Made by a program: the position numbers and the translations under genes. The notes below the pieces were generated by a model. It saw only the letters and a list, made by a program, of their open reading frames with translations, ran no database searches and was not told where the DNA came from. This document shows, piece after piece, positions 7,798 through 29,853 of a stretch of 64,000 bases of DNA. Location of the stretch: the IMG/VR virus record IMGVR_UViG_3300035703_000009, positions 1 to 64,000 of that record; one strand, 5' to 3'. How positions within the stretch are numbered: the stretch's first letter is position 1; each line of letters starts with the position of its first letter.

Positions 7798-8448
7798 ATG
7801 TCAGAACGAGTACTAAATTTCTCAGAATTCTTCACAAAATACTCAAAGGAAGGACACGTAGACCAGGCAAGCCTTGATAACTTTACAGGAGCAGCCGCTA
7901 ACTTTGAAGAAGGATTTGACAAAGACACATACGACCAAGCTCCACTGGGTCCAAAAAAACCGATCGCATCAAGCACTGAGACAACTCCTCCACAACCTGG
8001 AGAAGTAGGAGCTCCTACCTTTAACGCAGAAACAGAAGAAGACATGGTCGCGCCAGACGAGATCGTTGCTGCCGATGAACCTGAAGGAGATGCAGAAGAG
8101 CCAGCCGAAGAGGCTGATGAATCTGATGAGCCGACAGAAGAAAAAGAAGAGAATGATGAGACACCAGAACCGGAAGCCGGCGCTAATCCTAAGAAGAAAG
8201 AAGAAAAGGTAGAAGAAGGATTAGTTGTAGATTTCGCTAACTTCATCAATGAAGAGTTCGATGACTTTGAATACGAAGGAGATGATCACTATCATGAAGA
8301 GCAAGAAGAAGACGACTTATTGGGAGCTAATCCATTTGACGAAGACGATGACTTTGGCCATGAAGAAGACGAATACGAATATTGCGATCAGTGTGACGAA
8401 CCTATCTATCACACGGTAGAAGGAGCAAGCTGCGGATGTAACATGTAA
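7798..8448 (+). CDS. acidic low-complexity late protein, putative internal head protein
   Basis: Late promoter; N-terminal VLNFSEFF and internal VVDFANFINE motifs; D/E-rich; C-terminal CxxC...CxC. Confidence 0.7.
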   Translation: MSERVLNFSEFFTKYSKEGHVDQASLDNFTGAAANFEEGFDKDTYDQAPLGPKKPIASSTETTPPQPGEVGAPTFNAETEEDMVAPDEIVAADEPEGDAEEPAEEADESDEPTEEKEENDETPEPEAGANPKKKEEKVEEGLVVDFANFINEEFDDFEYEGDDHYHEEQEEDDLLGANPFDEDDDFGHEEDEYEYCDQCDEPIYHTVEGASCGCNM

Positions 8449-8460
8449 AAAACTTAACGA

Positions 8461-9054
8461 ATGACTGGAATAATTATTGCATTCTTAGCAGGAGCGACGG
8501 CCGCAACATCTGCCTTGCTTGCCAAAAAATACTTGGCAACTAAAAAAAGACCTGACCTGATCGCTGACACAGTGAACAACGCTAACGTGATACACGATCA
8601 ATTAGATAAAATGCTAATAGAGTTTGAAGCCAACCGAATTTGGATAGCACAGTTTCACAATGGCGGACACTATTATCCAACCGGTAAGTCAATCCAAAAA
8701 TTTAGCTTCTTTTTTGAAGTAGTAAAGAACACAAAGGACGCTATTCAATCTAATTTTCAAAACATACCAGTGAACCTGTTTAGCAGAGCGCTAGGACAGA
8801 TACTTGAGAACGACATAATCGCTATCCCAGACTATAAAGACAAGAAGGTCGCTACCTATGGATTAAAATATGTGGCTGAGACCCACAAGTCAAAGAGCTC
8901 ATACCTTTTTGCCATCCGCAACGTTGACAACCGACTGATTGGTGTCATCGGGATCGACTATACCGAAAAAACTAAAAAACTTGATCCTCTTGATGTGACC
9001 CTACTTAAGTTAGAGGCAACCAAGATCGGTGGAGTGTTGATGAGTCACCTATGA
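8461..9054 (+). CDS. TM + GAF-like domain protein, putative T4 gpT-type holin
   Basis: Single N-terminal TM helix followed by ANRIWIAQFHNG...LIGVIGIDY, a GAF-fold pattern. Confidence 0.6.
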   Translation: MTGIIIAFLAGATAATSALLAKKYLATKKRPDLIADTVNNANVIHDQLDKMLIEFEANRIWIAQFHNGGHYYPTGKSIQKFSFFFEVVKNTKDAIQSNFQNIPVNLFSRALGQILENDIIAIPDYKDKKVATYGLKYVAETHKSKSSYLFAIRNVDNRLIGVIGIDYTEKTKKLDPLDVTLLKLEATKIGGVLMSHL

Positions 9055-9326
9055 GACTATTAGAAAGCTTTATGGAGTTCATTCAATCTGCTGCAGTGCA
9101 CCAACAACCCGATGCATATTCATATTATGGCAGCAATCCACGTAGAGCAGGAAAACGACTGATTGATAACTTACGAGAATTTTCTCAATCGTCAAACTCG
9201 TCATCATCAAAATCGTCTAAGTCTCCAGTCGGAGCAGAAGGCACTGAACCTAGTGTAGGAAAGTCCCAATTGAGCAAGACGTCGTCTAACTCATCGCTGA
9301 CCATCGTCAAGACTTGTAAGTCTTGA
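9051..9326 (+). CDS. hypothetical late protein (3' half overlaps an antisense gene)
   Basis: ATGA-coupled to the upstream gene; N-terminus MRLLESFMEFI. Confidence 0.45.
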   Translation: MRLLESFMEFIQSAAVHQQPDAYSYYGSNPRRAGKRLIDNLREFSQSSNSSSSKSSKSPVGAEGTEPSVGKSQLSKTSSNSSLTIVKTCKS

Positions 9327-9442
9327 ATCGCATGCCCGCTACTCTTCGTTAAAACTCGAGTCTTAATGGCTTCAAGCTTTTTTAAGATCTCATTTTCAAT
9401 CTCTTTAAGCGCAATCTTGATTTCTGGTGATTCTTGTGACAT
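9185..9442 (-). CDS. hypothetical protein with acidic tail
   Basis: Own AAAAC-N18-TACTAT promoter ending 5 nt before the ATG. Confidence 0.65.
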   Translation of the reverse strand: MSQESPEIKIALKEIENEILKKLEAIKTRVLTKSSGHAIQDLQVLTMVSDELDDVLLNWDFPTLGSVPSAPTGDLDDFDDDEFDD

Positions 9443-9478
9443 GTTCTATAGTACTAGTAAAAGTTTTTCGAGTTTTAG

Positions 9479-9485
9479 ATAAATA
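9479..9485 (+). promoter_or_regulatory. late promoter ATAAATA
   Basis: 18 nt before ATG 9503. Confidence 0.7.
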
Positions 9486-9502
9486 ATCAAGACAAATAAC
9501 TT

Positions 9503-9895
9503 ATGAACATGCTTAAACTTAGAAGACTAGTAGAACAAGATGAACCGATGTCAGCAATGACTGCACCGGCTCAGCCTGACATGCAAATGCCAGCCATGCC
9601 AGCTGACTTACCTGCACAGCTACCTACTCCAGCTCAATCGACTGTACCTGTTGATCCGATGACAATGACTGTTAGGGACTTTTTAGATAAGTGCAAGTCA
9701 CTTGACCCTCTAGTTTGCATGGGCATAGAGTCATTCATAGAAAAAAATACTGAAGCTTTCGGCGCAGATCAAGCACAAAGTGAGCCAGACCTTACTTTCT
9801 CAAATGCAGTTCAACCTGCAGCACCTCAAGCACCAGCTCAAGTTGAACCATTTTCCCTAGATCAAGCACCGGACGCTCTTAACTTCCCGGGATAA
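9503..9895 (+). CDS. Pro/Ala-rich late protein
   Basis: Late promoter; N-terminal LRRLVEQ. Confidence 0.65.
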   Translation: MNMLKLRRLVEQDEPMSAMTAPAQPDMQMPAMPADLPAQLPTPAQSTVPVDPMTMTVRDFLDKCKSLDPLVCMGIESFIEKNTEAFGADQAQSEPDLTFSNAVQPAAPQAPAQVEPFSLDQAPDALNFPG

Positions 9896-10179
9896 TGAGA
9901 GCAAAGAACTTCGATCAATACTTAAATGAAGTGCTAGGAGCAAATTCGATGGAAACCGACCCATTGGACTTAATCTTACGTCCAGACATTATTAGGCCCA
10001 ACCCAGTGACTTTGGGAGCTGGCTCAAGCTCGACAATACCTATGCATTGGAACAACTCACCATTTCTATCAGGAAGCAGGCTGACCAGTGCTTTTGGAAT
10101 AAATCCAAAGGCTCCGACTAGAAAGAAAGCATTACGCTTCCATGAGTTCATAGGAGCAGTTAAGAAGCTCACTAAATAA
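9895..10179 (+). CDS. putative internal head protein
   Basis: N-terminus MRAKNFDQYLNE; C-terminal LRFHEFI. Confidence 0.65.
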   Translation: MRAKNFDQYLNEVLGANSMETDPLDLILRPDIIRPNPVTLGAGSSSTIPMHWNNSPFLSGSRLTSAFGINPKAPTRKKALRFHEFIGAVKKLTK

Positions 10180-10182
10180 ATA
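10176..10182 (+). promoter_or_regulatory. late promoter ATAAATA
   Basis: 15 nt before ATG 10197. Confidence 0.7.
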
Positions 10183-10196
10183 ATAAAAAGAAGACC

Positions 10197-10562
10197 ATGG
10201 CATACGTCTCAAACTTTAAGAAATTCATCAAAACAGAAGAAAAGAAAACGACTGAAACTGGTGCGAACCCATCAATAGAGGAACAGGTTACATCGACTGA
10301 ACCTACTACTGATACTCCAGACACGAATGCTGCTCAGACCGAGACTCCGGCTGCTCCGGCAAGCGTAGAAGCAGATCCTGCGGTTGCAGCAGCTCGTCAA
10401 TCAGTCGCTCAAGCTATCGCAAATCGTGATAAGACGGTAATGGCAAAACAGGCTGAACTAGATAAACTAAAGACTGATCAGAATAACTTGGTTAACACAG
10501 CTAACACTAACTTAAATAAAGCCCTGCAAGACGCAGCTAAAAAACAAACAACTCAAGCCTAA
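10197..10562 (+). CDS. putative internal head protein, Thr/Ala-rich
   Basis: N-terminus MAYVSNFKKFI; late promoter. Confidence 0.65.
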   Translation: MAYVSNFKKFIKTEEKKTTETGANPSIEEQVTSTEPTTDTPDTNAAQTETPAAPASVEADPAVAAARQSVAQAIANRDKTVMAKQAELDKLKTDQNNLVNTANTNLNKALQDAAKKQTTQA

Positions 10563-11005
10563 TGGAACCCGTAAAGTCATACTCTGAGTTCGTCAACGAA
10601 GGCACCAAAGAAGTGGTGTACCCTACCAACTTTAAGGGCATGGTACAGAGCACACTAGCCAGCGTTTATACATCAGTGATGGCGATTGCCCAGGAACTAG
10701 CTAACGAAAAGGCAGCTCGTAATCCTTCGCGATATACCGGCACTATCGAGGAAGTTGACATCACCAGAGCGTTGAACATGATCTTTCACAGCGACTGGAA
10801 AAAGAAGCTAAAGCAGAAGGCCCTAGGCCAAATGATGTTAAAATCGGCGGAACGCGCCGGCAAGCAGGACGCAGTCGTCGCTAAGAAGAATCAACGTGCG
10901 ATGGGTAGAATGCTTGGAGACAAGAAATTTAACCTGGAAGTCGATAAACAGAGCGTTCGTTTTAGCGACGAACGTGGAGGTTTTGGACCCGGCTCAAACC
11001 AATAA
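10562..11005 (+). CDS. putative internal head protein
   Basis: N-terminus MEPVKSYSEFVNE resembles the T4 capsid-targeting sequence. Confidence 0.65.
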   Translation: MEPVKSYSEFVNEGTKEVVYPTNFKGMVQSTLASVYTSVMAIAQELANEKAARNPSRYTGTIEEVDITRALNMIFHSDWKKKLKQKALGQMMLKSAERAGKQDAVVAKKNQRAMGRMLGDKKFNLEVDKQSVRFSDERGGFGPGSNQ

Positions 11006-11011
11006 AGAGAA

Positions 11012-11746
11012 ATGACTGAACATGAACTCATACGCGACATAAACGACGAGATCACCTTCTCAGGCTCTCTACCTTACTCTTTGCCAGAAAGGGAGATCAA
11101 ACGTATCCTTACTAACGATTCTAGGTTCTTTTGGGACAATTGGAGACACGCAGTTGAGAGTAGATACTTACTCTTACCGACTGAGTTATTTGATACTCCA
11201 CAGTTCAAGAAGCATCGCCAGCTTCAACTACCAGATTGCGTGCAGTTCGTGGTAGACTTTAAAGAGGCCAAGGGTGGATCGATCTTCGCAACAATAGACC
11301 GCGACTTCTCAGAACAAAAATTTATTGGTTCCGAGATCTACTTGACCCCATTCATCGGCGAGAGCATCATGTATCGTACTGTGATCTTCTCATTTTTAGA
11401 CCTAACTAAGGGTCTAATGCTCGATACTATCGCATATGACTATAATAAGAATACCAAGATGCTTGGAGTATTAGGTAGGACTCCAAAGACTAATGCAGTA
11501 CTTAGGATCTATAAAAAGCTAGAACAGGAGAAGCTCTTTGAGGACGAACTCTTTCAGAGATATGTGCGTGCCCATGCAAAGGTAAGACTATCTCACATGC
11601 TACAGACATTTAACTATACCTTACCTGGAGACGTCACTGTGAACTATGCTAACATTGTCACCACTGCTGAAAAGGAGATGGAAGACGTTAAAGCTATGAT
11701 GAAAGGTGAGAATACGCCGGATTGGCTGTACCTTTATCATCAATAA
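11012..11746 (+). CDS. neck/head-tail adaptor protein (T4 gp13-like)
   Basis: C-terminal FQRYVRAHAK...FNYTLPGDVTVNY...AEKE pattern resembles gp13; late operon. Confidence 0.65.
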   Translation: MTEHELIRDINDEITFSGSLPYSLPEREIKRILTNDSRFFWDNWRHAVESRYLLLPTELFDTPQFKKHRQLQLPDCVQFVVDFKEAKGGSIFATIDRDFSEQKFIGSEIYLTPFIGESIMYRTVIFSFLDLTKGLMLDTIAYDYNKNTKMLGVLGRTPKTNAVLRIYKKLEQEKLFEDELFQRYVRAHAKVRLSHMLQTFNYTLPGDVTVNYANIVTTAEKEMEDVKAMMKGENTPDWLYLYHQ

Positions 11747-11755
11747 TCTATTAAA

Positions 11756-12133
11756 ATGCCACAAATTAGAGACTTTTACTTTAGAGACCAAACTGATCCT
11801 GCTTTTAGAGCTGACCAGCTAGAAGTATACGATAGCTTAGAAGAGACTCTACAGCAGGTGAAGATGACTCTGTTTACTCGTAAGGGCGAGGTGCTCGGCG
11901 AACCTAACTTTGGGATCGATGTTGAGAAGTATCTCTTTGAGTTTACAGTAGACCCTTTTTCCCTTTCTAAAGAAGCGACTGACCAGCTCAACACATATGT
12001 TGGTGAAGGTCGCTCTCGCAATATCACGACCCGCCCTGCAACCTATAAAGATTCCAGAGCTGGTCGTGAAATTTTCGTTCTTCTAATTGATATTCCTGAA
12101 TTGAAGAATCCTCTTTCTATTTTTTACGATTAA
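11756..12133 (+). CDS. baseplate wedge/sheath initiator (T4 gp25-like)
   Basis: LFTRKGEVLGEPNFGIDVEKYLFE motif. Confidence 0.8.
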   Translation: MPQIRDFYFRDQTDPAFRADQLEVYDSLEETLQQVKMTLFTRKGEVLGEPNFGIDVEKYLFEFTVDPFSLSKEATDQLNTYVGEGRSRNITTRPATYKDSRAGREIFVLLIDIPELKNPLSIFYD

Positions 12134-12135
12134 AT

Positions 12136-13845
12136 TTATAGAGCGCCTGCGCCTTTAGTTTCTCCGCCTTCTATGGTCTCAGCTCCTGCGGCAGGCTGTT
12201 CTGCTGTTGCTGCTGGTGCAGCAGCTGATGCACCTCCTCCTGCTGGAGCAGCCGCTTCTGATGCTGCAGCTTTTTCTTCAGCTGCCTTGCTCGCATCGAT
12301 CCAGTGTTTGTTAGAATCAATTTCGTCAGCAGTTAACCTTAGTTCTTTTCTAATGAGGTATTCGGTTGAGAAATATGGTGTACCATCGTCCTTCATGATT
12401 CCTTTCTTCGCAGTAAACGAAGCGATTCTCTTGGATTCAAGCTCATTCTGCTTCATTTCTTCAAAGACGTTATCGTTATTGAAAGTTATTCCAAGACCAT
12501 TACCGAACTTATAATCAGTCGCAAGATCAGGAAAGTCTAGGCACATCTGCAGGTAAAAAGGTTTAGTAATTAGTTCGGCAAAGACCGTACGCAGACGTCG
12601 AACGAATTTCTGATAACGAATCTCCTCACGAGTGATGCCCTCAGCGTTTAGCGTGAAGGCCCCCATACCGCTCTGTCCTTCCCAACGTGAGTAAGGAATC
12701 TTGGAGTCCATCTTCAGTTTCTTATAGAAGTAGTTTAGCAATTCAGAACCAGATAAGTTTGGGCCAGGCCATTGTAGAGGTTCGATCTTTACTTGTTGGT
12801 TCTGGTCATTGACTGGTAGCACATAGTTCTTATAGAACATCACGTTCGGCTTGCCCTCAACGCTCAGCTCACCAGTGTCACCGTTAAAGTAGATGTCCTC
12901 CTTAAGCAAGTTCATGAACTCTCTAACGTCTTCCTGACTCTTCTGTAAGCTCTTAGAACCAATCGGCACAGTAGTCGTCAGACGAATCGGTGCGTTCATC
13001 ACGTGCCAAATTACTTTGCTGTGTTCGATGATGCGTAATAAGTTAAAAGACCTGATCAAGCGCTCGGTGAAAGAGACGCGTTTGGTCCTAAAGTGGTTTG
13101 AGTAGGAAAGGTAGATGATTTGTGAGTCGTTTAGCACTCTAGTCGAACCGTTTGACTGGTCGTACTGTACCCATTGCAAGAATAACTTGCCCTTAGCATC
13201 CTTTTGTAACTGAGGAGCTAGACTCACAGGATCAAGCTCTTTAAAGCCGATGATCTCGGTAGGTTTCTGTAGGTTGTCATACAGAATCTCAAAGGCCAGG
13301 TGACCCTCAACCAGGAACTGGAAGGCGTACTGCCATGCCGTGATAGCTGTGTCAAACCCCCAAGCTGTATAGATCTTCTCAAAGTTCTCGTTGTACTTGG
13401 TGACAACCTTTTCTTGATAGTTTAGACGCTCGTCCTTAGTATTACCTTGATAGATCATCTTACCGGTAAGGTCTCGGCTGTAACAAAACCTGTTCTCCTC
13501 GTCATAGACGATCATGTCGTCGACGATGGTTTCGAGAATGAATTCAATCTCGCCATTGGCCGCAACGTCACGTAGTCGTTCACGCTTGACAGCATAGTCC
13601 AATTGGAAAAAGGCGATCGCTTTGGTCCTCAGCTGGGAGGTAGTATCGGCGATTGCCATCGAAAACTTGAGCAGGTCTGAGCTGTCTGCGCTAAGCTTGT
13701 TTGAGCGAGCTGCGATCTGGCTCTCGATGAAGCCGATCGCCTGTGAGTTTTTTAGGAGAAGGTCCTCGTATCGAGTGCCGAACTTACTAAGTCCTTCAAG
13801 CGCTCCTCCTGCTCTGTTTTTACGTACGTCTAAGAATCCTGCCAT
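12136..13845 (-). CDS. gp20: portal protein (T4 gp20-like)
   Basis: EIEFILETIVDDMIVYD, FLVEGHL, YFYKKL...KIPYSR, ITREEIRYQKFVRRLR and EEMKQNEL. Confidence 0.9.
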   Translation of the reverse strand: MAGFLDVRKNRAGGALEGLSKFGTRYEDLLLKNSQAIGFIESQIAARSNKLSADSSDLLKFSMAIADTTSQLRTKAIAFFQLDYAVKRERLRDVAANGEIEFILETIVDDMIVYDEENRFCYSRDLTGKMIYQGNTKDERLNYQEKVVTKYNENFEKIYTAWGFDTAITAWQYAFQFLVEGHLAFEILYDNLQKPTEIIGFKELDPVSLAPQLQKDAKGKLFLQWVQYDQSNGSTRVLNDSQIIYLSYSNHFRTKRVSFTERLIRSFNLLRIIEHSKVIWHVMNAPIRLTTTVPIGSKSLQKSQEDVREFMNLLKEDIYFNGDTGELSVEGKPNVMFYKNYVLPVNDQNQQVKIEPLQWPGPNLSGSELLNYFYKKLKMDSKIPYSRWEGQSGMGAFTLNAEGITREEIRYQKFVRRLRTVFAELITKPFYLQMCLDFPDLATDYKFGNGLGITFNNDNVFEEMKQNELESKRIASFTAKKGIMKDDGTPYFSTEYLIRKELRLTADEIDSNKHWIDASKAAEEKAAASEAAAPAGGGASAAAPAATAEQPAAGAETIEGGETKGAGAL

Positions 13846-13848
13846 GTA

Positions 13849-14469
13849 TTAAAGTGTTGATTTTTCTATGAATTCCTCAAAGACTAGCTCCATGTTTAGC
13901 ATTTCTGGAAAGAGCCCAAGTGGTGAGAACTTTGGTCGAACTAGGAGCCCAAATTGATCGAAATCAATGAGCCGAGCTTCGACTACGTCCTCTATTTTAT
14001 ATTTATTTATAGCATAGTCGAGGTTTGTTGCTCCAATCGACTGTGCAAGTAAGCTGGGTGGAAAGAGATAGAACCTCTTGTCAAGGAGACGACGTTGTTC
14101 GATCGGAAGTAAATTACCGTCTTCGAAAAGAGTAGGCAGGCCATTTCGTGAAGCTAACTCATAGTATGCCTCAAGTAGTTTAGATGCGATTTTTGCCGGA
14201 ATCACCTTCAAGTTTAGCATCAACATCGTCTGTTGCCAGTTATCATGATAGAGTAGCAGACCAGTCGGCATCATGTCATAGTATCGCCGACCTCTGGTGA
14301 GAGTCGGTACTGTCTGTTCAGTAAGGGCGACTGCTGGGCTGATCATAGTAAGCGAATAGAATCTTCCAGGAATGATCTGCAGCTTTGGCTGCGGAATTCC
14401 GACCTCCTGGCCTACTGCTGTCAGGGAAAGGCGTCCGTCGTTCTTTTTTATTTGGCTAAAGGTCTTCAC
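13849..14469 (-). CDS. putative DNA end protector (T4 gp2-like)
   Basis: IPGRFY, YYDMMP and LNL motifs; located next to the gp4-like gene as in T4. Confidence 0.5.
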   Translation of the reverse strand: MKTFSQIKKNDGRLSLTAVGQEVGIPQPKLQIIPGRFYSLTMISPAVALTEQTVPTLTRGRRYYDMMPTGLLLYHDNWQQTMLMLNLKVIPAKIASKLLEAYYELASRNGLPTLFEDGNLLPIEQRRLLDKRFYLFPPSLLAQSIGATNLDYAINKYKIEDVVEARLIDFDQFGLLVRPKFSPLGLFPEMLNMELVFEEFIEKSTL

Positions 14470-14481
14470 TAATTATTTCTT

Positions 14482-14982
14482 TTACATGTTATTGAACAGA
14501 AAGTTTTCGGTGATGATACCAAACTTCATGTTTTGACTCAACGCATACGCTTGAGCGGCCTTAAACTTTGCAGTATTGATGATATACATCTTCGCATGAC
14601 GCGCATAGTTTAATGTCTGTTTTTCAGTGAGCCGAGTAGGAGGCTCAGGTGGAGTCAAGTACTTGTTGGGTTTGATCTCGATAAGCCACTTCGTCACAGA
14701 ATCATCCTGGTTCCTCGTGCACATATAACAGTCGATCCAATATGTACTCTCCTTTTTGAGAATCGGATTAAAGTAAGGGATCCCGTGAGGTTCTGAGGCA
14801 TACTCAAGGACTCGGATATGATTGTCACAGTACTCTAAGAACTTAAATTCCCAGCTAGAACGATAGATGATCTTAGTAAGGTCTCCCTTGTACTTTTCTG
14901 GGTTCTTGGGAGTAAAATAACCCTGACGAACTCTGCCGTTTTGCGGCTTGAGAAAATCATGGATGTCCTTTTTAGCTTTCAT
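14482..14982 (-). CDS. gp4: head completion nuclease (T4 gp4-like, TnsA-N fold)
   Basis: PKNPEKYKGD...IIYRSSWE.KF..YCD, IPY, IEIKP, N.AK..AA and IITE. Confidence 0.85.
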   Translation of the reverse strand: MKAKKDIHDFLKPQNGRVRQGYFTPKNPEKYKGDLTKIIYRSSWEFKFLEYCDNHIRVLEYASEPHGIPYFNPILKKESTYWIDCYMCTRNQDDSVTKWLIEIKPNKYLTPPEPPTRLTEKQTLNYARHAKMYIINTAKFKAAQAYALSQNMKFGIITENFLFNNM

Positions 14983-14989
14983 ATAGGAT

Positions 14990-14996
14990 TATTTAT
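14990..14996 (-). promoter_or_regulatory. late promoter ATAAATA (gp4-gp2-portal operon)
   Basis: GGATAAATAATCC on the minus strand just upstream of gp4. Confidence 0.65.
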
Positions 14997-15000
14997 CCAA

Positions 15001-15031
15001 AAATAAAAATGGAGCCGACTTGGGCTCCATT
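15001..15031 (-). terminator. intrinsic terminator
   Basis: AATGGAGCC/GGCTCCATT hairpin followed by a T-rich tract on the minus strand. Confidence 0.7.
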
Positions 15032-15051
15032 CAGTTATCTGTGAGTTAGGC

Positions 15052-15363: not shown

Positions 15364-15379
15364 GGTGGTATGTTTTTAT

Positions 15380-15386: not shown

Positions 15387-15395
15387 CAACCCAAC

Positions 15396-19527: not shown

Positions 19528-19872
19528 ATGAAAACATTCGTTCACTCTTTTAATTCTTTTTCTCTTAATGAGATGGCAATCAAGTCTCGAGAAGAAATGT
19601 ATCGCCCTGAAAAGATCGAGATCGATCTTTCTGGTCCAGAAGGCAACGCTTTCTACCTCATGGGTTTAGCTAGAAAGTTATACCGTCGAAAATATCCGGA
19701 GCAAAAGGAAGGATTTAACGTTTCTCAAAAGCTTGCCAAAAAGTTCGATCCAGAGATGGAACTAAAATCGGCTGAGGAACTTTTTATGGAGGAGATGATG
19801 AGTGGCGATTACGATCACCTATTAAAGGTGTTTGATGATGAGTTTGGAGACATGGTAACTTTATATCGATAA
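19528..19872 (+). CDS. conserved small phage protein with capsid-targeting-like leader
   Basis: MKTFVHSFNSFSLNE leader, then IDLSGPEGNAF...MMSGDYDHLL; ATAAATA at 19516-19522. Confidence 0.7.
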   Translation: MKTFVHSFNSFSLNEMAIKSREEMYRPEKIEIDLSGPEGNAFYLMGLARKLYRRKYPEQKEGFNVSQKLAKKFDPEMELKSAEELFMEEMMSGDYDHLLKVFDDEFGDMVTLYR

Positions 19873-22051: not shown

Positions 22052-22079
22052 TTTATACTAAAACTGGAGCTAAAGTTTA
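22052..22079 (-). promoter_or_regulatory. TAAAC-N17-TATAAA promoter (uvsY-uvsW)
   Basis: Recurrent bipartite motif. Confidence 0.6.
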
Positions 22080-22562
22080 ACCCTGAAAGTCGTAGAATTT
22101 ATAGCAAGTGGAACCTACTCTAAAGTATTCATCATTCTCAAAGTCCATTGGTTCTATCGTGGAAATGATTTCGTTGCCTAGTTCCACTGAACTGCCGTCT
22201 GGTGAGTACATTTTTGCAGTATCAACGTTGGCTTGACCCGCAATGATTAGCTTGAGGTCATACTTTTCGTAAAGACGATGTGCGGTATCCGAATAGTCTA
22301 CGTCTGAATTAAGGATGATGAAAACTGACGGGTATTTGATCTTTTTACCTTCCTTGTCAAGGGTAGCGACCTGCTTGATGATGTTTTCTTGAGCTTTATT
22401 TTCCTCTAAGTAGCTTAAATAACTGCTCCTGGTCCTAAATACTAGGATGGCAAACGGTCTTTTCATTTGCAAGGTGTCGCGGACCTCAGTCCAAGTCGGA
22501 GAAGGAGTCTCTTGCTGTTCATTAAGATAATGCTGGAAGGTTTTTAGCTTTTTTTGAGCCAC
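22077..22562 (-). CDS. putative internal head protein
   Basis: GTG start, MAQKKLKTFQHYLNE; late promoter 19 nt upstream at 22581-22587. Confidence 0.7.
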   Translation of the reverse strand: MAQKKLKTFQHYLNEQQETPSPTWTEVRDTLQMKRPFAILVFRTRSSYLSYLEENKAQENIIKQVATLDKEGKKIKYPSVFIILNSDVDYSDTAHRLYEKYDLKLIIAGQANVDTAKMYSPDGSSVELGNEIISTIEPMDFENDEYFRVGSTCYKFYDFQG

Positions 22563-22624
22563 TTGGACGAAACTTTTTATTATTTATCAATACAAGATAC
22601 TGAAATCTAATTAAGAAATTTAAC

Positions 22625-23185
22625 ATGATTACTCAACTTGACATATATGACTTTGACGAGACGTTAGTCAGAGCTCCAAGCTATACAAACAAAAAAACAG
22701 TAGAAAGAGCTCATCCTGAGCATAATTTTGACACGCCGTATGCCTTTTACGATCACTCAAAGTCCCTGTGTGAGGACTTACACCACATACAGCTCATTGC
22801 ACCAGTATATGAGTGTTGGGGTCAGGCAAACCAAAACCCATCGGCAATCACAGCATTGGTCACGCACAGAGTAGAAAGCCTAGCGGATGAAGTAAAGGAC
22901 GTGTTGAACAGACGTGGCGTATCAATGGACTACTACTTCTTTTATGGAAGGGCTATCCCAAAGTTCAAAGCGATTGAGGAACTGCTCGAAAGGTTTCCAA
23001 ACATCAAGAAAGTAAGGATATTTGATGACTCATACGAACAGATCGACATCTACTTGACATACATTAACATCATCAAAGAAATAGACCATGACATTGAATA
23101 TGAGTTGTGGGCAGTAGACAAGACCAAGATATTTAAAGTAAACTCGCTAAACATTAGCGAACCTAAACGTATAAGTCTGATATGA
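22625..23185 (+). CDS. HAD-superfamily phosphatase (RNA-repair 'Swiss army knife'-like)
   Basis: DFDETL motif I, VTHR motif II, K, FDDS motif IV. Confidence 0.8.
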   Translation: MITQLDIYDFDETLVRAPSYTNKKTVERAHPEHNFDTPYAFYDHSKSLCEDLHHIQLIAPVYECWGQANQNPSAITALVTHRVESLADEVKDVLNRRGVSMDYYFFYGRAIPKFKAIEELLERFPNIKKVRIFDDSYEQIDIYLTYINIIKEIDHDIEYELWAVDKTKIFKVNSLNISEPKRISLI

Positions 23186-23778
23186 TAGTGATGATAGAAG
23201 GCCCACGTAACGTCGGCAAGACCACACTTATGTCCTCTTTTCTTGAAAAGAACAAGGATTCTAACGTGATCTATTACAAGTTTCTCTTTGCAAAGTACAT
23301 CGATCAGTTTAACATGCGAGACCAGGAATCTGGACCAGGCATGCACTACTTTAGCTTAGGCAACATACTTAGCATCTTTGAGCTTAATCAGACTCTATTT
23401 AAAGACAAGATCATCTTATTTGACCGATGCATCCACTCAGCCTATGTCTGGGCGATCTATCGAGAAAGGTTAGGTCGTGAAAAGTTGTTGGCTGAATACT
23501 CAAAGATACTCAACAGTGAGCTCTACACCGATTGCTCTACCTTTTACATCAATCGTCGAGAATCTATCAAGACTAAAACTAGAGGAAAGGACTTATTTGA
23601 TAACTTTGAAAGTCATGATAAAGAGTTGGCCCTGTTTGAAGAGCTGCTCGACTTAAACATGAAACCCGTCTCAGACGCCAATAGAGGAAATCACTTTGTG
23701 AAGTTCATCAATGATTTTAACGATGAAAGCATTAGAGATTTCAACTACGTACTTGGTGACTTGATAAAGAGAGGGTAG
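23182..23778 (+). CDS. P-loop nucleotide kinase (dNMP/thymidylate kinase-like)
   Basis: EGPRNVGKTT Walker A; LFDR...S.YV. Confidence 0.8.
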   Translation: MIVMIEGPRNVGKTTLMSSFLEKNKDSNVIYYKFLFAKYIDQFNMRDQESGPGMHYFSLGNILSIFELNQTLFKDKIILFDRCIHSAYVWAIYRERLGREKLLAEYSKILNSELYTDCSTFYINRRESIKTKTRGKDLFDNFESHDKELALFEELLDLNMKPVSDANRGNHFVKFINDFNDESIRDFNYVLGDLIKRG

Positions 23779-23787
23779 TTTGCCTTA

Positions 23788-23794
23788 ATAAATA
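23788..23794 (+). promoter_or_regulatory. late promoter ATAAATA
   Basis: 19 nt before ATG 23813. Confidence 0.7.
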
Positions 23795-23812
23795 ATAAAA
23801 AACCAAGTAAGG

Positions 23813-24382
23813 ATGCGTAAAGAACTTAGATCCTTTGACCAATATTTAGTCGAACAAGCGGAGACAGCAGTCGCTAACCGTCCGTTAAAAGGATATACTG
23901 CCGAACAAATGATCACCAGGATCGGAGAACTAATGGAAGTTCTATCTGATGACATTCGATTTGGAGTTCCATCTGACACTCTTGGTAGAGTCACTACTTA
24001 TCGTGATGCAAACGGTGCCATCCAAAAGATCCAAGACATGCAGCACTACTATTCAAGCAAGGGCGAAGAAGTTCGCTTCTATGCATGGTCAATCAGTTAT
24101 TCAGGTAGCTGGAAGGCGACCAAGAATCTAAAGAGTAAAATCGAGGCTGCTGGAGGGTTTGGAGAAGAGAAGCTAAATATGAATCTTAAAAAGATCATAG
24201 ACTACTTTACTGAGAACGCAGAGGACTCCGACAACGTTCGTAGCATATCGATCAGCATGGACGCAGAGAGCATTCGCAAGGCCATGCAAAAGCCTGCTGA
24301 AAAACCAGAAGCCGCTGAGACTCCAGCGCCGACTGAAACCGCTAAATCTGAAGAAAAACCAGCTGAAACACCGGCTGAATAA
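23813..24382 (+). CDS. putative internal head protein
   Basis: N-terminus MRKELRSFDQYLVEQ; Pro/Ala/Glu-rich tail. Confidence 0.7.
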   Translation: MRKELRSFDQYLVEQAETAVANRPLKGYTAEQMITRIGELMEVLSDDIRFGVPSDTLGRVTTYRDANGAIQKIQDMQHYYSSKGEEVRFYAWSISYSGSWKATKNLKSKIEAAGGFGEEKLNMNLKKIIDYFTENAEDSDNVRSISISMDAESIRKAMQKPAEKPEAAETPAPTETAKSEEKPAETPAE

Positions 24383-24385
24383 TCT

Positions 24386-26296
24386 ATGGCAGGAATAAAC
24401 AACTTACGAGAAATACGCGACAAGCGCGGGGATGACTTTTTAAATGGCATGATGAATAATTACGTCATCATCAATGAGAAGGTCGATGGCACATTCTTTG
24501 GAGTAAAAAAGACTAAAGGAGACCTATTTAAGTACTTCAAGAAATCGGGAGAGATCAGCTATGTCGATCGAGTGCTGATGAAGTACTACAACCACGTGAT
24601 CGCATATTTTGAGTCGATTCCTCTCGAGAAGAGGCAACGTATTCCAACAAATTTCTTTTTTGGATTCGAGTACTTGACCAAACGTGACGCAGCGGCAAGC
24701 CGATACTCAAGGATGCCAAAGAATGGCTTGGTTCTTTCCTACATCCATAAGTTAGATGATGCTGGAAACGTCATTGCTACAGTTCAAACAAAAGAACATC
24801 TTGATAGATGGGCGGACTATCTAGGAGTAGAGAGACCGCCGATAATCTTTGAAGGCAAGCTCGACGACGAACAAAGAGCCGAGATACTTGAGTTCGTCTA
24901 TGCACCAAACGATAAGTTATACGAAAAATTCAAGACCAAGTCCTTTACCAAGTACATCATCTCGGTTCTAAACAAGGATTATGAGTCGGCCTTCTTAAAG
25001 AACTCTAAGGAAGCTGGAATCGAAGGAATCATTTTTAGGTTCTATGATCAGAACTCTGAAAACCCAGAAGCAAACGTCTTCCTAGCAAAGTTGATAGATC
25101 CGCTATTTCAAGCAAAGGTAAAAGAAGGCGAGCCTGCTCGTAAGAATTCCTCGCAAGACTATATCTGGCTGATCGTCATCGACCTAATGAACCACTTTGA
25201 GATGTATGACCTTTCCGCATTAAAGGAAATGGCAAGCACACCAGGATCCTTTGAAGAAAAGTACGTGCAAATCATCAATTCCATATTTAAAGACTTTATT
25301 AAACAATACGCTGGCAAGTATGCAGGTCTGCATCTAGAGGTTCCAGAATACTTAAATCGACCTGAGTTCAACCTTGATTTTAGCCTAATCCAGGATCCAG
25401 AAGTAAAGAAGTTGGTCGAATCCAGCGAGACCTATGCTGAGATCTATAAGATCTTGCTCAACTTTTTCAGAAAGGCTCGTAAGAAATCGACTTCGGGTTT
25501 CTTCACCAACGAGTTACTGACTCAACTCAACCTCATCGTCGCAAAGATTCGTAACGTGATCATGGGAGACGAGGTGTATGAGGGACTCTTCCCAAGCTTT
25601 AGCGAGTTTGTGGGATCAGCAAACGATGAGTACATGCTGAGCGAGAAAGAAGTCGCTGAGCGCAATAGCAAAAAAGTCGAGGCTAATGAGGTCAATGTTC
25701 TAATTGGAAGCTTTCAGCCAGTGACGATGGGTCACATCAAAGCGGCAAAGAAGCTAAAGGAAAAGAACGGGTTACCGTGCGTCTTTGTTGCGATAAAGCC
25801 TCAATCGCCCACCGCAAAGTCACCTTTTTCTCCACGCTTAACTAAAGCACTATTAGACAAGGTGCAACAGGAGTTTAACGACCTGATAGTCGACGTCAAG
25901 ATAGTCGACTCTGGCCAGATTGAGGATGTAGTAGGCACATTGACTCCAAACTATGAACCTGCTCTTTGGGGAACAACTGAGCGTCGTCTTAAGGACTTTG
26001 CTCTGCAATTAGATTACATCAAAAAAAGAAACATTCCAATAAGGCTCTCTTCGAACCTAAAGTTGACTGAATTACCAGTCTACGTTAGATCAGAAGAAGT
26101 TATTGCTGCCATAAAGAGCTCAGACTTTGCTGAATTCAAAAAGCTAGTGCCAATATCTGTCGCATCAGAGTTCTTTAACTTACAAAAAGAGCTCGGATCG
26201 AAGATTGATGAAGCGACTAATTCAATGCAGAAGATATTTGAATCCGCAGAGATCTCGATTGAGATCGAGGATCCAAAGCTAAAGGAATCGGACTAA
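24386..26296 (+). CDS. RNA ligase (Rnl2-like) fused to a HIGH-class nucleotidyltransferase domain
   Basis: Ligase motifs I EKVDGT, III FGFEY, IV EGIIFR, V LAKL; C-terminal GSFQPVTMGH (T/HxGH)...SPF...FKKLVP. Confidence 0.75.
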   Translation: MAGINNLREIRDKRGDDFLNGMMNNYVIINEKVDGTFFGVKKTKGDLFKYFKKSGEISYVDRVLMKYYNHVIAYFESIPLEKRQRIPTNFFFGFEYLTKRDAAASRYSRMPKNGLVLSYIHKLDDAGNVIATVQTKEHLDRWADYLGVERPPIIFEGKLDDEQRAEILEFVYAPNDKLYEKFKTKSFTKYIISVLNKDYESAFLKNSKEAGIEGIIFRFYDQNSENPEANVFLAKLIDPLFQAKVKEGEPARKNSSQDYIWLIVIDLMNHFEMYDLSALKEMASTPGSFEEKYVQIINSIFKDFIKQYAGKYAGLHLEVPEYLNRPEFNLDFSLIQDPEVKKLVESSETYAEIYKILLNFFRKARKKSTSGFFTNELLTQLNLIVAKIRNVIMGDEVYEGLFPSFSEFVGSANDEYMLSEKEVAERNSKKVEANEVNVLIGSFQPVTMGHIKAAKKLKEKNGLPCVFVAIKPQSPTAKSPFSPRLTKALLDKVQQEFNDLIVDVKIVDSGQIEDVVGTLTPNYEPALWGTTERRLKDFALQLDYIKKRNIPIRLSSNLKLTELPVYVRSEEVIAAIKSSDFAEFKKLVPISVASEFFNLQKELGSKIDEATNSMQKIFESAEISIEIEDPKLKESD

Positions 26297-26298
26297 AT

Positions 26299-26327
26299 TA
26301 AAACCTTTTATCAAAAAAGGATATAAT
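26299..26327 (+). promoter_or_regulatory. TAAAAC-N17-TATAAT promoter
   Basis: Recurrent bipartite motif. Confidence 0.7.
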
Positions 26328-26360
26328 ATTGGTAAGCAAAAAAAAGCTTTACTCGACCGA

Positions 26361-27932
26361 ATGAAGTATACAGAACTCGAAGAAGCTGACATAGATTACA
26401 TTTCTGAAATCTATTTCAACAAGGAAATTTCATGGGATCAGCGACTTCGCATGCTCTCTGAACGCTATAAAAGATCTGAGCGCACGATTCAACACTGGAT
26501 CTCAAAGCTAGGATTTAGCACCAAACAACAAGAAGAATCTCCGCAGCTGATCGCTGCCAAGTCCCGAGAGCTAGATCGAAGCAAATCGAAGTTCATCATC
26601 ACCTGGGCACAAAACAATACTGACGTTCACGAAAGGTTTATCACCAACCTAGAAGCATATGCTGCTGAGCTGGATGCCAGCATTCACGTGATTGCAGGTA
26701 GATACAAGAACCCAACATCTGTGTTTACCGATCGCAAGTATGACGTATGGTCAGACCGAATCGAAAGGTACTTGGACGCGAATCGTCATGATGTGCATAA
26801 GTACGTCTCAATCATGTCTGACGTGAAGATACAGCCGACTGCGGTCGATCCGATGACGGGCTTACAGGGCATGAGCGGTATCAATTCCTGCGTTTTTGGT
26901 TCGCCTAAGGTGCAGATGGAAATGATCCCAGTTTTGACTGGCAACAGACCAAAGATGATGGTAACTACTGGCGCATGCACAGTGAAGAACTACACCGACT
27001 CAAAGGCCGGTAAAAAGGGCGAGTTTCATCACACTCTAGGATTTGCCATCATTGAGATCAAGGACGATGACACTTTTTTCATAAGACAAGTAACAGCTTC
27101 AGATAACGGAGACTTTAACGACCTATACTTTAACGTAAAGTACTCTGAAGGTGAGGGTAAGAGCTCAATTAGTCGTAACTCATCGATCGCTGCACTAGTG
27201 TTAGGCGATCTACACTATGGTCAACATGATCCTCAAGTATTAGACCAATCATTTAACCTGATGGCCAAGTTAAGTCCCGATCACGTCATCATCCACGACG
27301 CGTTTGACGGAACCTCAATCAACCATCATGAGACCAAGGACCCATTTGTCCAATACCAAAAGGAAATGGCTGGCACAAACTCGCTAAAGAAGGAGATAGA
27401 TGCCTTGTTGCTTGGCCTTGAAGACTTTCAAGACTATAACGTGGTCATCGTTCGCAGCAACCACGACGACTTCATCGATCGTTGGTTAAAGGACACCGAT
27501 TGGAGAAAGACTGTCACCCCAAAGAACTCTCTCGAATACATGCAATACTCGGCAGCCATACTAAGCGGCCAAGCTCCAAACGGAGTCATTCCATACCTGA
27601 TCAACCAAAAGTTTCCTCACTTTAAGACACTAGGCAGAAACGATAGCTACCTGGTGAAGGGCTGGGAACTAGGTCAGCATGGAGATATCGGTTCGAGCGG
27701 AACCAGGGGATCGCTATTACAGTTACGCAAGCTCAACACCAAGATAGTGGTAGGCCACTATCATGCTCCAGGCAGAAAAGACGGTGCTTTGTCAGTTGGA
27801 ACCTCGACCAAGCTTCGCCTAAACTATAACCTAGGCGCTAGCAGTTGGTTACAGTCTCACGTAATCATCCATCAAGACGGAAAAGCACAACACATTAACT
27901 TTATTAACGGCGAATTCACTACTCTAGAATAA
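26361..27932 (+). CDS. HTH + calcineurin-like metallophosphoesterase (T5 A1-like)
   Basis: N-terminal HTH (SERTIQHW); GDLH, HD.FD, SNHD, QHGD and GHYH metal-binding motifs. Confidence 0.75.
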   Translation: MKYTELEEADIDYISEIYFNKEISWDQRLRMLSERYKRSERTIQHWISKLGFSTKQQEESPQLIAAKSRELDRSKSKFIITWAQNNTDVHERFITNLEAYAAELDASIHVIAGRYKNPTSVFTDRKYDVWSDRIERYLDANRHDVHKYVSIMSDVKIQPTAVDPMTGLQGMSGINSCVFGSPKVQMEMIPVLTGNRPKMMVTTGACTVKNYTDSKAGKKGEFHHTLGFAIIEIKDDDTFFIRQVTASDNGDFNDLYFNVKYSEGEGKSSISRNSSIAALVLGDLHYGQHDPQVLDQSFNLMAKLSPDHVIIHDAFDGTSINHHETKDPFVQYQKEMAGTNSLKKEIDALLLGLEDFQDYNVVIVRSNHDDFIDRWLKDTDWRKTVTPKNSLEYMQYSAAILSGQAPNGVIPYLINQKFPHFKTLGRNDSYLVKGWELGQHGDIGSSGTRGSLLQLRKLNTKIVVGHYHAPGRKDGALSVGTSTKLRLNYNLGASSWLQSHVIIHQDGKAQHINFINGEFTTLE

Positions 27933-27945
27933 ATAACTAAAAGAG

Positions 27946-28143
27946 TTGCTAGTGAAACACGTCAAAGCTAAACCAGAGAGCTGGTCAAACGTCGAAAAAT
28001 ATCGTAAGGGTAAGGCTCGATTAGAGAATGCAGTGATGCAACACCCAGAAGACGATCCAAAGACCTCAATCTACGATTTTGTGAAACGCAACATCAAGCG
28101 TAAGCTTTGGGTCATTCCTTATGACAAGCTTAAGGCAAAGTAA
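27946..28143 (+). CDS. small hypothetical late protein
   Basis: ATAAATA at 27929-27935 upstream; start uncertain (TTG or GTG). Confidence 0.55.
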   Translation: MLVKHVKAKPESWSNVEKYRKGKARLENAVMQHPEDDPKTSIYDFVKRNIKRKLWVIPYDKLKAK

Positions 28144-28158
28144 ATAATTAAACGATAG

Positions 28159-29853
28159 ATGCGACACATCACTAGAATATTTGAATCCTTTGACCTTTCA
28201 GCAATCAAGTCACAGCTTGAAGGCAAGGTCGGCGGCAACATACAGGATGATAAGACCAAGATCACTTCCTTTGAAGGACTGGAAAAGGTGTTTGACCTCA
28301 TTCCTTTAGAGCTGACTGAGTCTGCAAATTCACCGGAGATGAATGACCTAGTCGGGTTGTTGATCGATAAGGATCGAATTGACTTTCTAAAGGCATATGT
28401 CGAGAAAGAGGCCAAGGTTGTCAATCAAATAGCCAATGACCTAAAGCCGATCTTCACACCAAAGGACGAGCTCAACTTTGCTCGTTCGATCCAAGCATAC
28501 ACTACAGTCTCACAAAGACTTCTTAAGATCCATAACCTAATGAGTCCGGCTCCAGCAAAGGCTAACGAGTCGAGGCTGGTTGAGGAGTTAAATCCCGACG
28601 AAGACACAAAGAAAAAGATGGAGGAGATTGCGAGAGTGAGCAAGGAGAGCCTAGCGAACAGCTACGCCAAGATCTTTAACATTCAGACAAAAAACATTGA
28701 GTCGATACCAGAGACGGGTGAAGGCGCTGACAAGCTAGAGAGCCTCATTGAGTTATTAAGTTCGCTTGGAGTGCTATCCCTAGTTAAGGAAGAAGCGGCA
28801 AAGAAAAAGAGTCGCATGCCCAAAGAAGAGTCCCTCTCCACCAAAAAGAAGAAAAGGATTAGCGTACGACTACTTAGAGCGATAGCCATCTCGCAGTTGC
28901 CGGCAATCTCAAACCAACAGATAGACAAACCCGGTGACTATTTTAGACTATTCAAGTCATTAGAGTCCCAAAACCCAGCATGGATGGACCTTTCAATCGA
29001 AAAATACGTCTTTGGTGGAAACGCCAAGGAGGTATCTGACTTCAACGCTACTGCTCGTGGCACTGAAAGCGCGACCGAAGAGAACCAGATCAACTACTTG
29101 CGAGCGAATCGTTCATGGATCCTAAGCTACATCAAGAGCGACAAGGACGGAACCTTGACCGATAAGGAAGAAAATAATTATGTCTCACAGCTTGAGACCA
29201 CCTGCACTGAAAAGGAAAAGGAGATCAAGAACTATTACTTGTCCCGTGACTTCAACATCAGTAACGTGAGCGGCATACAAATTAAGCCAGAGATTAAGCT
29301 TCCTCTCTACTCAAAAGTAAGGTTAGCTGTGTCTGAAAGCGACAGGCTAAAGGAAAGCCCGCTTAGAAACATCGTAGGAGGAGCTCTGGCAATAGTCGGT
29401 GGACTCTTTTCAAGAATAGAGGACAAAGTTGACTCAGGAGCGCTGGCTGCATCCAAAGCTAGAAACGAAGCCATATTCAAGGGAATTAGTGCAATCGCTA
29501 AAGGAACTGTAACACTAGTCGGTGGCAAACAAGCCGGTCGAGACTATGAAGCTGGCCTAGAGAAGATAAGTTCTAAGTTAAACCCAGAACGCATCACCCT
29601 ATCCCAAGACGAAAGGAAAGGTAGAGTTAAAGAAGATATGATCGCGACGACTGATGCGACAGGATATGCTCCAGTGAATCCAGAAGCACCAGGTCAGTTC
29701 ATGCAGACTCCTAATTCCATGGCAGGTACCATGGACACTTTCTCACTACTTGGTCCAGGTAAAAAGAGCGAGGCTAAGAAAAAGTCAAAGACTGCAGGTT
29801 CAAAGGTGTTAACCTTTGCCGATTTCATCGATAGTAAAAGCAAAGTTGATTAA
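28159..29853 (+). CDS. large late protein, putative internal head/ejected protein
   Basis: N-terminus MRHITRIFESF, C-terminal VLTFADFID, hydrophobic Gly-rich helices; GTAAATAAT upstream. Confidence 0.7.
   Translation: MRHITRIFESFDLSAIKSQLEGKVGGNIQDDKTKITSFEGLEKVFDLIPLELTESANSPEMNDLVGLLIDKDRIDFLKAYVEKEAKVVNQIANDLKPIFTPKDELNFARSIQAYTTVSQRLLKIHNLMSPAPAKANESRLVEELNPDEDTKKKMEEIARVSKESLANSYAKIFNIQTKNIESIPETGEGADKLESLIELLSSLGVLSLVKEEAAKKKSRMPKEESLSTKKKKRISVRLLRAIAISQLPAISNQQIDKPGDYFRLFKSLESQNPAWMDLSIEKYVFGGNAKEVSDFNATARGTESATEENQINYLRANRSWILSYIKSDKDGTLTDKEENNYVSQLETTCTEKEKEIKNYYLSRDFNISNVSGIQIKPEIKLPLYSKVRLAVSESDRLKESPLRNIVGGALAIVGGLFSRIEDKVDSGALAASKARNEAIFKGISAIAKGTVTLVGGKQAGRDYEAGLEKISSKLNPERITLSQDERKGRVKEDMIATTDATGYAPVNPEAPGQFMQTPNSMAGTMDTFSLLGPGKKSEAKKKSKTAGSKVLTFADFIDSKSKVD

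Follow-up and report, generated by a model that had tools for sequence, protein, structure and literature searches.

Capsid-targeting-like leader peptides on late genes of an uncultivated large phage and the set of packaged proteins they predict

Leader peptides and the proteins that carry them

The window analyzed in this study (positions 1 to 64,000 of IMG/VR virus record IMGVR_UViG_3300035703_000009) is a 64-kb stretch at the start of a 207-kb viral contig, hereafter G0, with an estimated completeness of ~81%. Between positions 7798 and 29853, it contains late genes whose unrelated products begin with similar short peptides resembling the capsid-targeting sequence (CTS) of the phage T4 internal proteins. 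A sequence-only reading of the window had listed nine N-terminal peptides of this kind and four internal or C-terminal copies, and a check of the open reading frame (ORF) sequences found each of them where it had been placed. The N-terminal peptides were VLNFSEFF (ORF at 7798), LESFMEFI (9051), AKNFDQYLNE (9895), VSNFKKFI (10197), VKSYSEFVNE (10562), VHSFNSFSLNE (19528), LKTFQHYLNE (22562, on the minus strand and with a GTG start), LRSFDQYLVE (23813), and RIFESF (28159). Two further copies were internal, i.e., VVDFANFINE (residues 143-152 of the ORF at 7798) and FPSFSEFV (residues 403-410 of an RNA ligase ORF), and two were C-terminal, i.e., LRFHEFI (ORF at 9895) and VLTFADFID (ORF at 28159).

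A strict form of the motif, [FY]xx[FY][LIVMF]xE, was counted at N-terminal and internal positions in G0 and three relatives assembled in full, i.e., G1 (217 kb), G2 (125 kb), and G4 (119 kb), with the longest non-overlapping ORFs as gene calls and with the scaffold protein described below left out. In G0, the strict motif occurred at 9 of 3952 N-terminal positions versus 13 of 60,641 internal positions (odds 10.6, p 3e-6). It was likewise enriched at the N-termini in G1 (p 6e-6), G2 (p 1e-7), and G4 (p 6e-3), with 7-12-fold enrichment across the four genomes, and a version with flexible spacing gave the same picture. An extended form with no Glu requirement, [ILVM]x[STN][FY]xx[FY][ILVM], showed N-terminal odds of 16 (p 5e-17) and a modest enrichment at C-termini (odds 3.6, p 0.007). 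The same scripts picked up T4 IPII and IPIII as a positive control, and N-terminal enrichment was also found in the 735-kb phage LR756501; the Tenacibaculum phage PTm1, analyzed as a further control, showed no N-terminal enrichment over the 100 kb scanned. Additionally, the codons beneath the motif differed synonymously, indicating that the motif is conserved at the protein level.

The 33 leaders collected from the four genomes gave the consensus [ILV]-K-[ST]-F-x-[QED]-F-[ILV]-N-E; their Glu stands at residue 10-17, and the residue after it is S, A, or Q. The first aromatic residue (position 0) was Phe in 24 leaders and Tyr in nine, the second (position +3) was Phe in 25 and Tyr in eight, and position +4 was Ile in 15, Leu in 12, and Val in six; Glu at position +6 is part of the motif definition. 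The general form can be written as M-x(0-6)-[ILV]-K-[ST]-[FY]-x-x-[FY]-[ILV]-[NATV]-E, spanning 10-17 residues. In addition, a second leader type, [FY]xxWxx[LIV]xE, was found seven times at N-termini versus twice internally in the four genomes.

The leader carriers of these genomes fell into ~25 unrelated families in an all-against-all BLAST comparison, with about twenty carriers per genome, most of which belong to no known Pfam or PHROG family. Within families, the leader was retained while the body diverged. In the 9895 family, the leader had been swapped or shortened, e.g., MRAKNFDQYLNE, MRLKRLVE (followed by GFGA), or MKKANE (followed by WYGA), and the aliphatic variant LKRLVE stood in for FDQYLNE in some orthologues; the homologous body started directly past Glu in every case. 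The 19528 family, the clearest example of a portable leader, is represented elsewhere by ~55 homologue clusters of leaderless proteins of 62-103 amino acids (aa) that start with MAIKSK. Only its eight closest relatives carry the leader MKTFVHSFNSFSLNE, joined right before the Met (...LNE/MAIKS), and five intermediates have an aliphatic variant at the same place (MKKHVLKLHE/MAIV). A cut after Glu would thus free the ancestral protein at its own initiator Met. These results bear out the proposals of the sequence-only reading that the tag is portable and that the protein at 19528 is a tagged small conserved domain, since its leader stands on a phrog_1933 domain that is leaderless elsewhere.

The carriers of the 7798-11005 cluster are encoded on the plus strand, beside the portal gene. 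Protein A (7798-8448, 216 aa) is acidic (pI 4.1, 33% Asp+Glu) and combines the Glu-less N-terminal peptide RVLNFSEFF (nt 7810-7833) with the cleavable-type internal copy VVDFANFINE (nt 8224-8253) and a C-terminus of the form CxxC...CGCNM. In an alignment of nine homologues, the internal motif was a conserved island amid variable acidic tracts with VEE[SG] just before it, and the 69216 family outside the window has likewise a conserved internal cleavable-type copy between variable acidic tracts, preceded by VEE[SG]. Judging from these sequences, each of the two families resembles a fusion of two tagged units. Protein B (9051-9326, 91 aa) begins with LLE/SFMEFIQ, and 17 homologues retain M-K-[KR]-[IL]-V-E-N-[FY]-x-[ED]-F-[ILM]; because the aromatic pair comes after the possible L-x-E site, this tag may survive cleavage. 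The following 130-aa protein (9503-9895), which is acidic and rich in Pro, Ala, and Gln, has a late-promoter motif at its head and the aliphatic leader variant LKLRRLVE at its N-terminus.

Protein C (9895-10179, 94 aa) is basic and carries the cleavable-type leader MRAKNFDQYLNE (nt 9895-9930) as well as a conserved Glu-less tag near its C-terminus (LRFHEFIG, nt 10132-10155). Protein D (10197-10562, 121 aa), an acidic low-complexity protein, begins with VSNFKKFIKTEE, and 12 homologues retain [SN]FKKF[IM]K[TS]. Protein E (10562-11005, 147 aa) is conserved and basic, with the leader MEPVKSYSEFVNE (nt 10562-10600); Glu13 did not vary in an alignment of this protein, and conservation of Tyr7 and Phe10 was at least 90%. 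No tblastn match to this protein was found among 50,697 phage records. The 7798-11005 cluster contains conserved basic proteins alongside acidic or low-complexity ones, and several of its members are, by analogy with T4 gp67 and gp68, probably prohead-core components rather than effectors. The adjacent T4-type portal protein is encoded on the minus strand (12136-13845; phrog_213, E 1e-60), together with an adjoining 206-aa protein (13849-14469, minus strand) that ends with [VI][FYW]E[EDQ]F[ILM]xNS and has ~20 homologues.

Further downstream, protein F (19528-19872, plus strand, 114 aa) has the leader MKTFVHSFNSFSLNE (nt 19528-19572) ahead of its phrog_1933 domain. Protein G (22077-22562, minus strand, 161 aa) begins with MAQKKLKTFQHYLNE (nt 22562-22518); its orthologues retain KL[FY]E[DE][YH], often with Glu missing, and distant orthologues are leaderless. 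Protein H (23813-24382, plus strand, 189 aa) has the leader MRKELRSFDQYLVE (nt 23813-23854), which is kept in every orthologue at 30-80% identity of the body (e.g., as LFTQYIKE, GYLQYIKE, GNFKQFLNE, or KFKDYEHLNE). The next plus-strand ORF (24386-26296) encodes an RNA ligase and cytidylyltransferase-like fusion with weak Pfam matches, in which LFPSFSEFVG, lacking Glu, lies between the two domains; four orthologues have LFPSF[SGN][EQ][FY][IVF]G in this place, also without Glu, and the motif may be either a tag or a structural element. Protein I (28159-29853, plus strand, 564 aa) has a Lys-rich C-terminal part with the tag VLTFADFID (nt 29806-29832). The two tags proposed for this protein fared differently: the C-terminal one is conserved in orthologues and the N-terminal RIFESF is not. 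Searches of the PDB and of sequence atlases with proteins E, F, H, and I gave nothing informative.

Outside the window, further carriers of G0 were found at 94026, 94772, 133644, 167184, 170051, 170558, 195111, 197564, and 200293. The protein at 170051-170542 belongs to the NUDIX hydrolases, has an intact Nudix box, and carries the cleavable-type leader MLIKKFSDFVNE; its orthologue in G1 is also tagged, making the protein, on the basis of its sequence, a candidate packaged enzyme. Leaders of the second type (MSYLLSYQNWAKLNE and similar) were identified on a 421-residue protein with a peptidoglycan-binding PG_binding_1 domain (170558-171823; domain E 6e-17) and on two minus-strand products (195111-196898 and 197564-198136). 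In phage LR756501, three consecutive ORFs of 341-361 aa all begin with leaders (MSTLSHYKNFVNE, MIVGLKNFNGYVYE, and MALYNYNGFLFE), ~8-11 kb upstream of a protease-scaffold gene with 15 repeats.

Four families (28159, 9895, 156402, and 13849-14469) have conserved copies without Glu at the very C-terminus. The orthologues end with VLTFADFID, VTSFNDFLK, VLSFSDFIN, or ILDFTSFYK in the 28159 family and with LRFHEFIG, LSYQEFID, or LTYKDFIG in the 9895 family. Since targeting in T4 outlives the loss of the cleavable Glu, these copies may, by analogy, act as targeting tags that are not removed. Encapsulin cargo-loading peptides are short terminal tags, often C-terminal and unremoved, that dock cargo inside an HK97-fold shell. 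Their likeness to the copies described here is an analogy only, as they have other sequences, work with no protease or scaffold, and belong to cellular compartments.

Protease-scaffold fusion and late-promoter units

The plus-strand gene at 52877-54856 encodes an S77 prohead protease of the T4 gp21 family fused to a scaffold (PF03420, 43.6 bits, above the cut-off). The protease domain matched T4 gp21 (PDB 5JBL, E 1e-6), and the catalytic residues are kept, with His82 (DLDHPP) and Ser137/138 (SSRAAG) aligning with T4 ELNHPP and SSRGLG. The scaffold part consists of approximately ten tandem 14-residue repeats of the form xSIxYsEY[ILV]AExL (nt 53753-54214, residues ~293-446), modeled by AlphaFold at low confidence as a single long helix. 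These repeats carry the four key positions of the leader, i.e., aromatic-x-x-aromatic-aliphatic-x-Glu. A regular expression derived from the leaders found eight copies in the ~150 scaffold residues versus 13 in the other 60,641 residues of the proteome.

The repeat array was also present in G1, G2, G4, and the 735-kb LR756501 (at least 15 units), and it was degenerate in LR756500. In a library-wide search with the scaffold, 273 representative clusters matched at E values no higher than 1e-30; in the best 150 of the 273, 93 clusters had at least five repeat copies, overwhelmingly at 14-residue spacing, and the repeat consensus over clusters was K-S-I-K-Y-S-E-Y-L-A-E-N-L-D. These results suggest that, in a large clade of big uncultivated phages comprising at least 93 clusters at 50% identity and including the 735-kb genome, the predicted scaffold is a protease-fused tandem array of CTS-like units. 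In PTm1, the protease-scaffold fusion has a tandem repeat of another kind, W[IL]xxx[FY]TK[EQ]LSE (more generally W[IL]xxx[FY]TxxLxE), and no leader family matching this repeat was recognized in 100 kb of its genome. Two divergent scaffolds, P0093 and P0101, were found on 4-kb contigs only. The leader-rich genomes (G0, G1, G2, G4, and LR756501) all have regular scaffold repeats, a co-occurrence that rests on very few independent lineages, with PTm1 and LR756500 lacking leaders in the regions sampled.

The protease-scaffold gene is followed by that of a gp23-like major capsid protein (54884-56554, plus strand; phrog_138, tblastn). The N-terminal region of the capsid protein contains the aliphatic-x-Glu sites VLE, LAE, and LFE, and its WKPVLE corresponds to T4 WKPLLE. 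A DnaJ (J-domain) protein, possibly a chaperone of assembly, is encoded on the plus strand just before the genes for the protease-scaffold and the capsid protein (51831-52826). The next gene after that of the capsid protein, which encodes a DUF5856 protein (56652-57020, plus strand; annotated in PHROG as a starvation-inducible transcriptional regulator), has its own ATAAATAA motif.

The late-promoter-like motif ATAAATAA was counted 61 times versus ~22 expected copies; 44 of the 61 were located at most 45 nt upstream of an ORF on the same strand, usually 15-21 nt before the start codon, and the extended consensus was RATAAATAAWAAAAA. In the window, the motif was found on the plus strand at 7774-7781, 9479, 10176, 18110, 19516, 23788, 27929, 29876, 52852, and 56626 and on the minus strand at 14996, 15386, and 22587, and it heads the protease-scaffold gene and many other large ORFs of the late strand. 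The T4 late promoter is TATAAATA, which this motif resembles. A T4-type late promoter also fits the gp55-like late sigma factor encoded in the same genome (G0 114025-114423; phrog_234, E 4e-16).

In G0, 14 of the 16 leader genes were within units headed by ATAAATAA (Fisher p 6.5e-4), and leader genes of G2 were also associated with such units (p 7e-6). The other two leader genes seem to be enzyme genes that match the leader motif by chance. An equal frequency of the motif in non-late genes, which the sequence-only reading had named as fatal to its proposal, was not found. Judged in silico, the leader genes are therefore predicted to be expressed late, together with the head genes.

Interpretation and rival explanations

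Taken together, these peptides probably make up a system of T4-type capsid-targeting propeptides in a distant phage clade that is largely uncultivated; we assign this a probability of about 0.72. This reading is based on the match to T4, the N-terminal enrichment, the portability of the leader, the protease, the scaffold repeats, the predicted late expression, the Glu-less C-terminal copies, and the plausible cargo. The likeness to T4 leaders that had been proposed from the sequence was strengthened by the finding of the same four key positions as in IPIII and of a gp21-family protease with scaffold repeats of a similar motif in the same genome. We infer core binding, cleavage after Glu, retention in the virion, and injection from the sequences. 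In the mechanism envisaged, the aromatic pair would dock each carrier onto the assembling prohead core. The C-terminal portion of the protease-scaffold fusion, with its ~10 repeats of 14 residues in a helical array, would make up this core. After closure of the shell, the N-terminal gp21-family serine protease would cleave behind each Glu, reducing the scaffold to ~14-mers able to exit the head and removing the leaders too. Mature proteins would then stay in the head with the DNA, and some could be available for ejection into the host. Copies without Glu, whether C-terminal or behind an L-x-E site, would target proteins without being removed.

In T4, the CTS was described by Mullaney and Black (1996), as summarized in PMC9026906 and PMC3012670. 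The first 10 residues of IPIII are sufficient for head incorporation, residues 4 and 7 mainly set targeting, residues 8 and 10 set processing, and Asp at residue 10 stops cleavage while targeting is unaffected (PMC9026906). The positions mapped in IPIII are those conserved in the 33 leaders. Among the T4 sequences fetched for comparison, IPII and IPIII begin with MKTYQEFIAE/A and IPI with MKTFKEFTST...ITE/A. The peptides described here share with the T4 CTS an N-terminal place, a length of 10-19 residues, aromatic residues three apart followed by aliphatic-x-Glu, unrelated mature proteins behind the leader, late expression (predicted here), and a gp21-family protease; some relatives of protein E have MEKLVKTYQEFINE (KTYQEFINE), compared with MKTYQEFIAE in T4.

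The differences from T4 concern both the lineage and the system. The phages studied here are distant, with a capsid protein 32-38% identical to those of huge uncultivated and Lak phages, and have ~20 carriers per genome versus three internal proteins in T4. T4 Alt is also a CTS carrier. Glu-less C-terminal copies and the second leader type, [FY]xxWxx[LIV]xE, also set this system apart, and its scaffold is a protease-fused tandem array, whereas the one T4 gp22 sequence compared has no array. The mature parts are not homologous to IPI, IPII, or IPIII, with no Pfam or PHROG family in common.

Other phages load head proteins by related means. In the phiKZ-like giant phages (phiKZ, 201phi2-1, and SPN3US), many head proteins are cut after Glu by a gp21-related protease, and the propeptides, mostly >100 residues long with S/A/G-x-E or A-x-E sites, are thought to aid head incorporation (PMC5694885). 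Unlike the leaders here, these propeptides have no shared aromatic-pair tag; the 33 leaders are short (10-17 residues), and P3 is Ile, Leu, or Val in all of them, as in T4. For DarB of phage P1, a short N-terminal region is sufficient for head loading and delivery to the host (PMC9024508), although the Dar proteins have no common consensus, no cleavage was reported for them there (PMC9024508), and the head module is unrelated. In the literature searched, we found the motif described for T-even phages and not outside them, and the CTS discussed for T-even phages only and by analogy for phiKZ-like phages and P1. We did not find earlier descriptions of a protease-fused repeat scaffold with the four key positions, of non-cleavable terminal copies, or of about twenty carriers per genome.

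A more specific version of this reading, in which the CTS would be a free-standing copy of the scaffold repeat and the cargo would join the core by the contact that each repeat itself makes, is put forward tentatively, at somewhat less than even odds. The T4 CTS could then be a relic of an ancestral repeat arrangement, as KTYQEFIAE is nearer to the repeat consensus K-Y-S-E-Y-L-A-E than the cargo leaders are. In that case, the packaged and injected proteome could be read from the sequence, with the tagged NUDIX hydrolase among the candidates for anti-defence enzymes, and Glu-less terminal copies would mark permanently anchored proteins.

Several observations weigh against the capsid-targeting reading or its scaffold-copy version. 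Four of the nine N-terminal peptides in the window (7798, 9051, 10197, and 28159) have no Glu at the canonical position, and the related phage LR756500 had no leaders in the 42 kb sampled. A position-specific scoring matrix (PSSM) of 12 residues built from the scaffold repeats separated N-terminal leaders weakly (p 0.05-0.4), so the likeness is limited to the four key positions, and there are differences in the flanks, where the scaffold has Y/Y with A-E and the leaders have F/F with N-E. We accordingly do not claim the leaders as full copies of the repeat. The AlphaFold models of protein E and of the protease-scaffold had low confidence (predicted local distance difference test values of 59 and 46), too low for fold searches, and a complex prediction of these two proteins scored 0.00 and was uninformative as to binding. 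Moreover, packaging and cleavage are predictions from sequence for a phage that is known as a metagenomic contig and has no cultured relative.

The motif could also serve the prohead protease alone, as an extended site for recognition and cleavage that marks propeptide boundaries on head proteins and the scaffold without any targeting role, the proteins being brought in by other determinants. Such a role would suit the scaffold, which must be degraded and in which each repeat ends with aliphatic-x-Glu, and the internal copies in the 7798 and 69216 families resemble internal cut sites. The capsid protein, which has plain aliphatic-x-Glu sites with no aromatic pair in its N-terminal region, also speaks for this explanation. 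However, the Glu-less C-terminal copies of four families keep the aromatic pair, which argues for a role independent of cleavage, and the aromatic positions in T4 influence targeting and not processing. The addition of leaders to otherwise leaderless proteins is also sensible only if the leader delivers the protein to the protease, and we consider a cleavage site alone improbable. A different question is whether the carriers are injected at all, because they could mostly be accessories of the prohead core or scaffold like T4 gp67 and gp68, degraded or structural, rather than effectors. The position of the 7798-11005 cluster next to the portal gene, its small acidic or low-complexity members (A, the 9503 protein, and D), and the internal cut sites of A and the 69216 family are consistent with this. 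Other carriers are folded or enzymatic (the NUDIX hydrolase, the PG_binding_1 protein, the widespread phrog_1933 domain, and the basic proteins C and E), and the same leader in T4 serves injected anti-restriction proteins; this explanation is therefore unlikely for the carriers in general, although it keeps appreciable weight.

Two remaining explanations have far less in their favor. The peptide could be a short linear motif for another late partner, e.g., the J-domain protein encoded directly before the protease-scaffold and capsid genes (51831-52826), instead of a signal for capsid loading. No link was found between the J-domain protein and the motif, and such a partner would not account for the tandem repetition in the scaffold, for the agreement with the T4 cleavage rule, or for the invariant Glu, so this proposal is very improbable. 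The pattern could also stem from chance, from composition, or from a signal in the nucleotides at gene starts, in line with the loosest form of the motif, [FY]xx[FY][LIVMF], which was just ~2-fold enriched at N-termini. The strict and extended forms were nevertheless 7-16-fold enriched in four genomes, and the PTm1 control was negative. A translation-signal or compositional origin was rejected on the basis of the synonymous codon variation and the conserved internal and C-terminal copies, and we give it practically no weight.

If the capsid-targeting reading is correct, the packaged proteins of these phages can probably be predicted from sequence, and the leader provides a rule to list proteins that are probably loaded into the head; in T4, early-acting anti-defence factors sit among such proteins. 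It would also carry a mechanism of T-even phages into a distant, very large, and uncultivated clade. Reviews of the T4 internal proteins describe an affinity of the CTS for the prohead core without naming the binding partner, and the tandem scaffold motifs with the CTS key positions provide a concrete candidate for it. Additionally, short cleavable and non-cleavable tags could be of use in loading proteins into capsids.

Relatives of the contig and other genes in the window

In the IMG/VR database, 66 contigs were related to G0, with a portal identity of 63-83%; G1, G2, and G4 are three of these. The nearest public genomes by capsid protein (tblastn) were those of huge uncultivated phages, with LR756500 at 38%, and of the Lak phages of Prevotella at 32%, followed by jumbo phages of Chryseobacterium and Tenacibaculum (~28%). 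No DNA nearly identical to the window was found among the 50,697 phage records.

Between the ligase fusion and protein I, the plus-strand ORF at 26361-27932 encodes an untagged metallophosphoesterase of 523 aa with a strong match to a PHROG family annotated as DNA transfer protein (phrog_1745, E 5e-146). On the minus strand, the window contains a low-GC island (38000-50500; 31-35% versus ~44% elsewhere) with genes encoding an NAD-dependent epimerase/dehydratase, a UDP-glucose/GDP-mannose dehydrogenase, an NAD synthase, and glycosyltransferases of families 25, 11, and 29, the last being sialyltransferase-like. This island is probably an acquired glycan-modification cassette.

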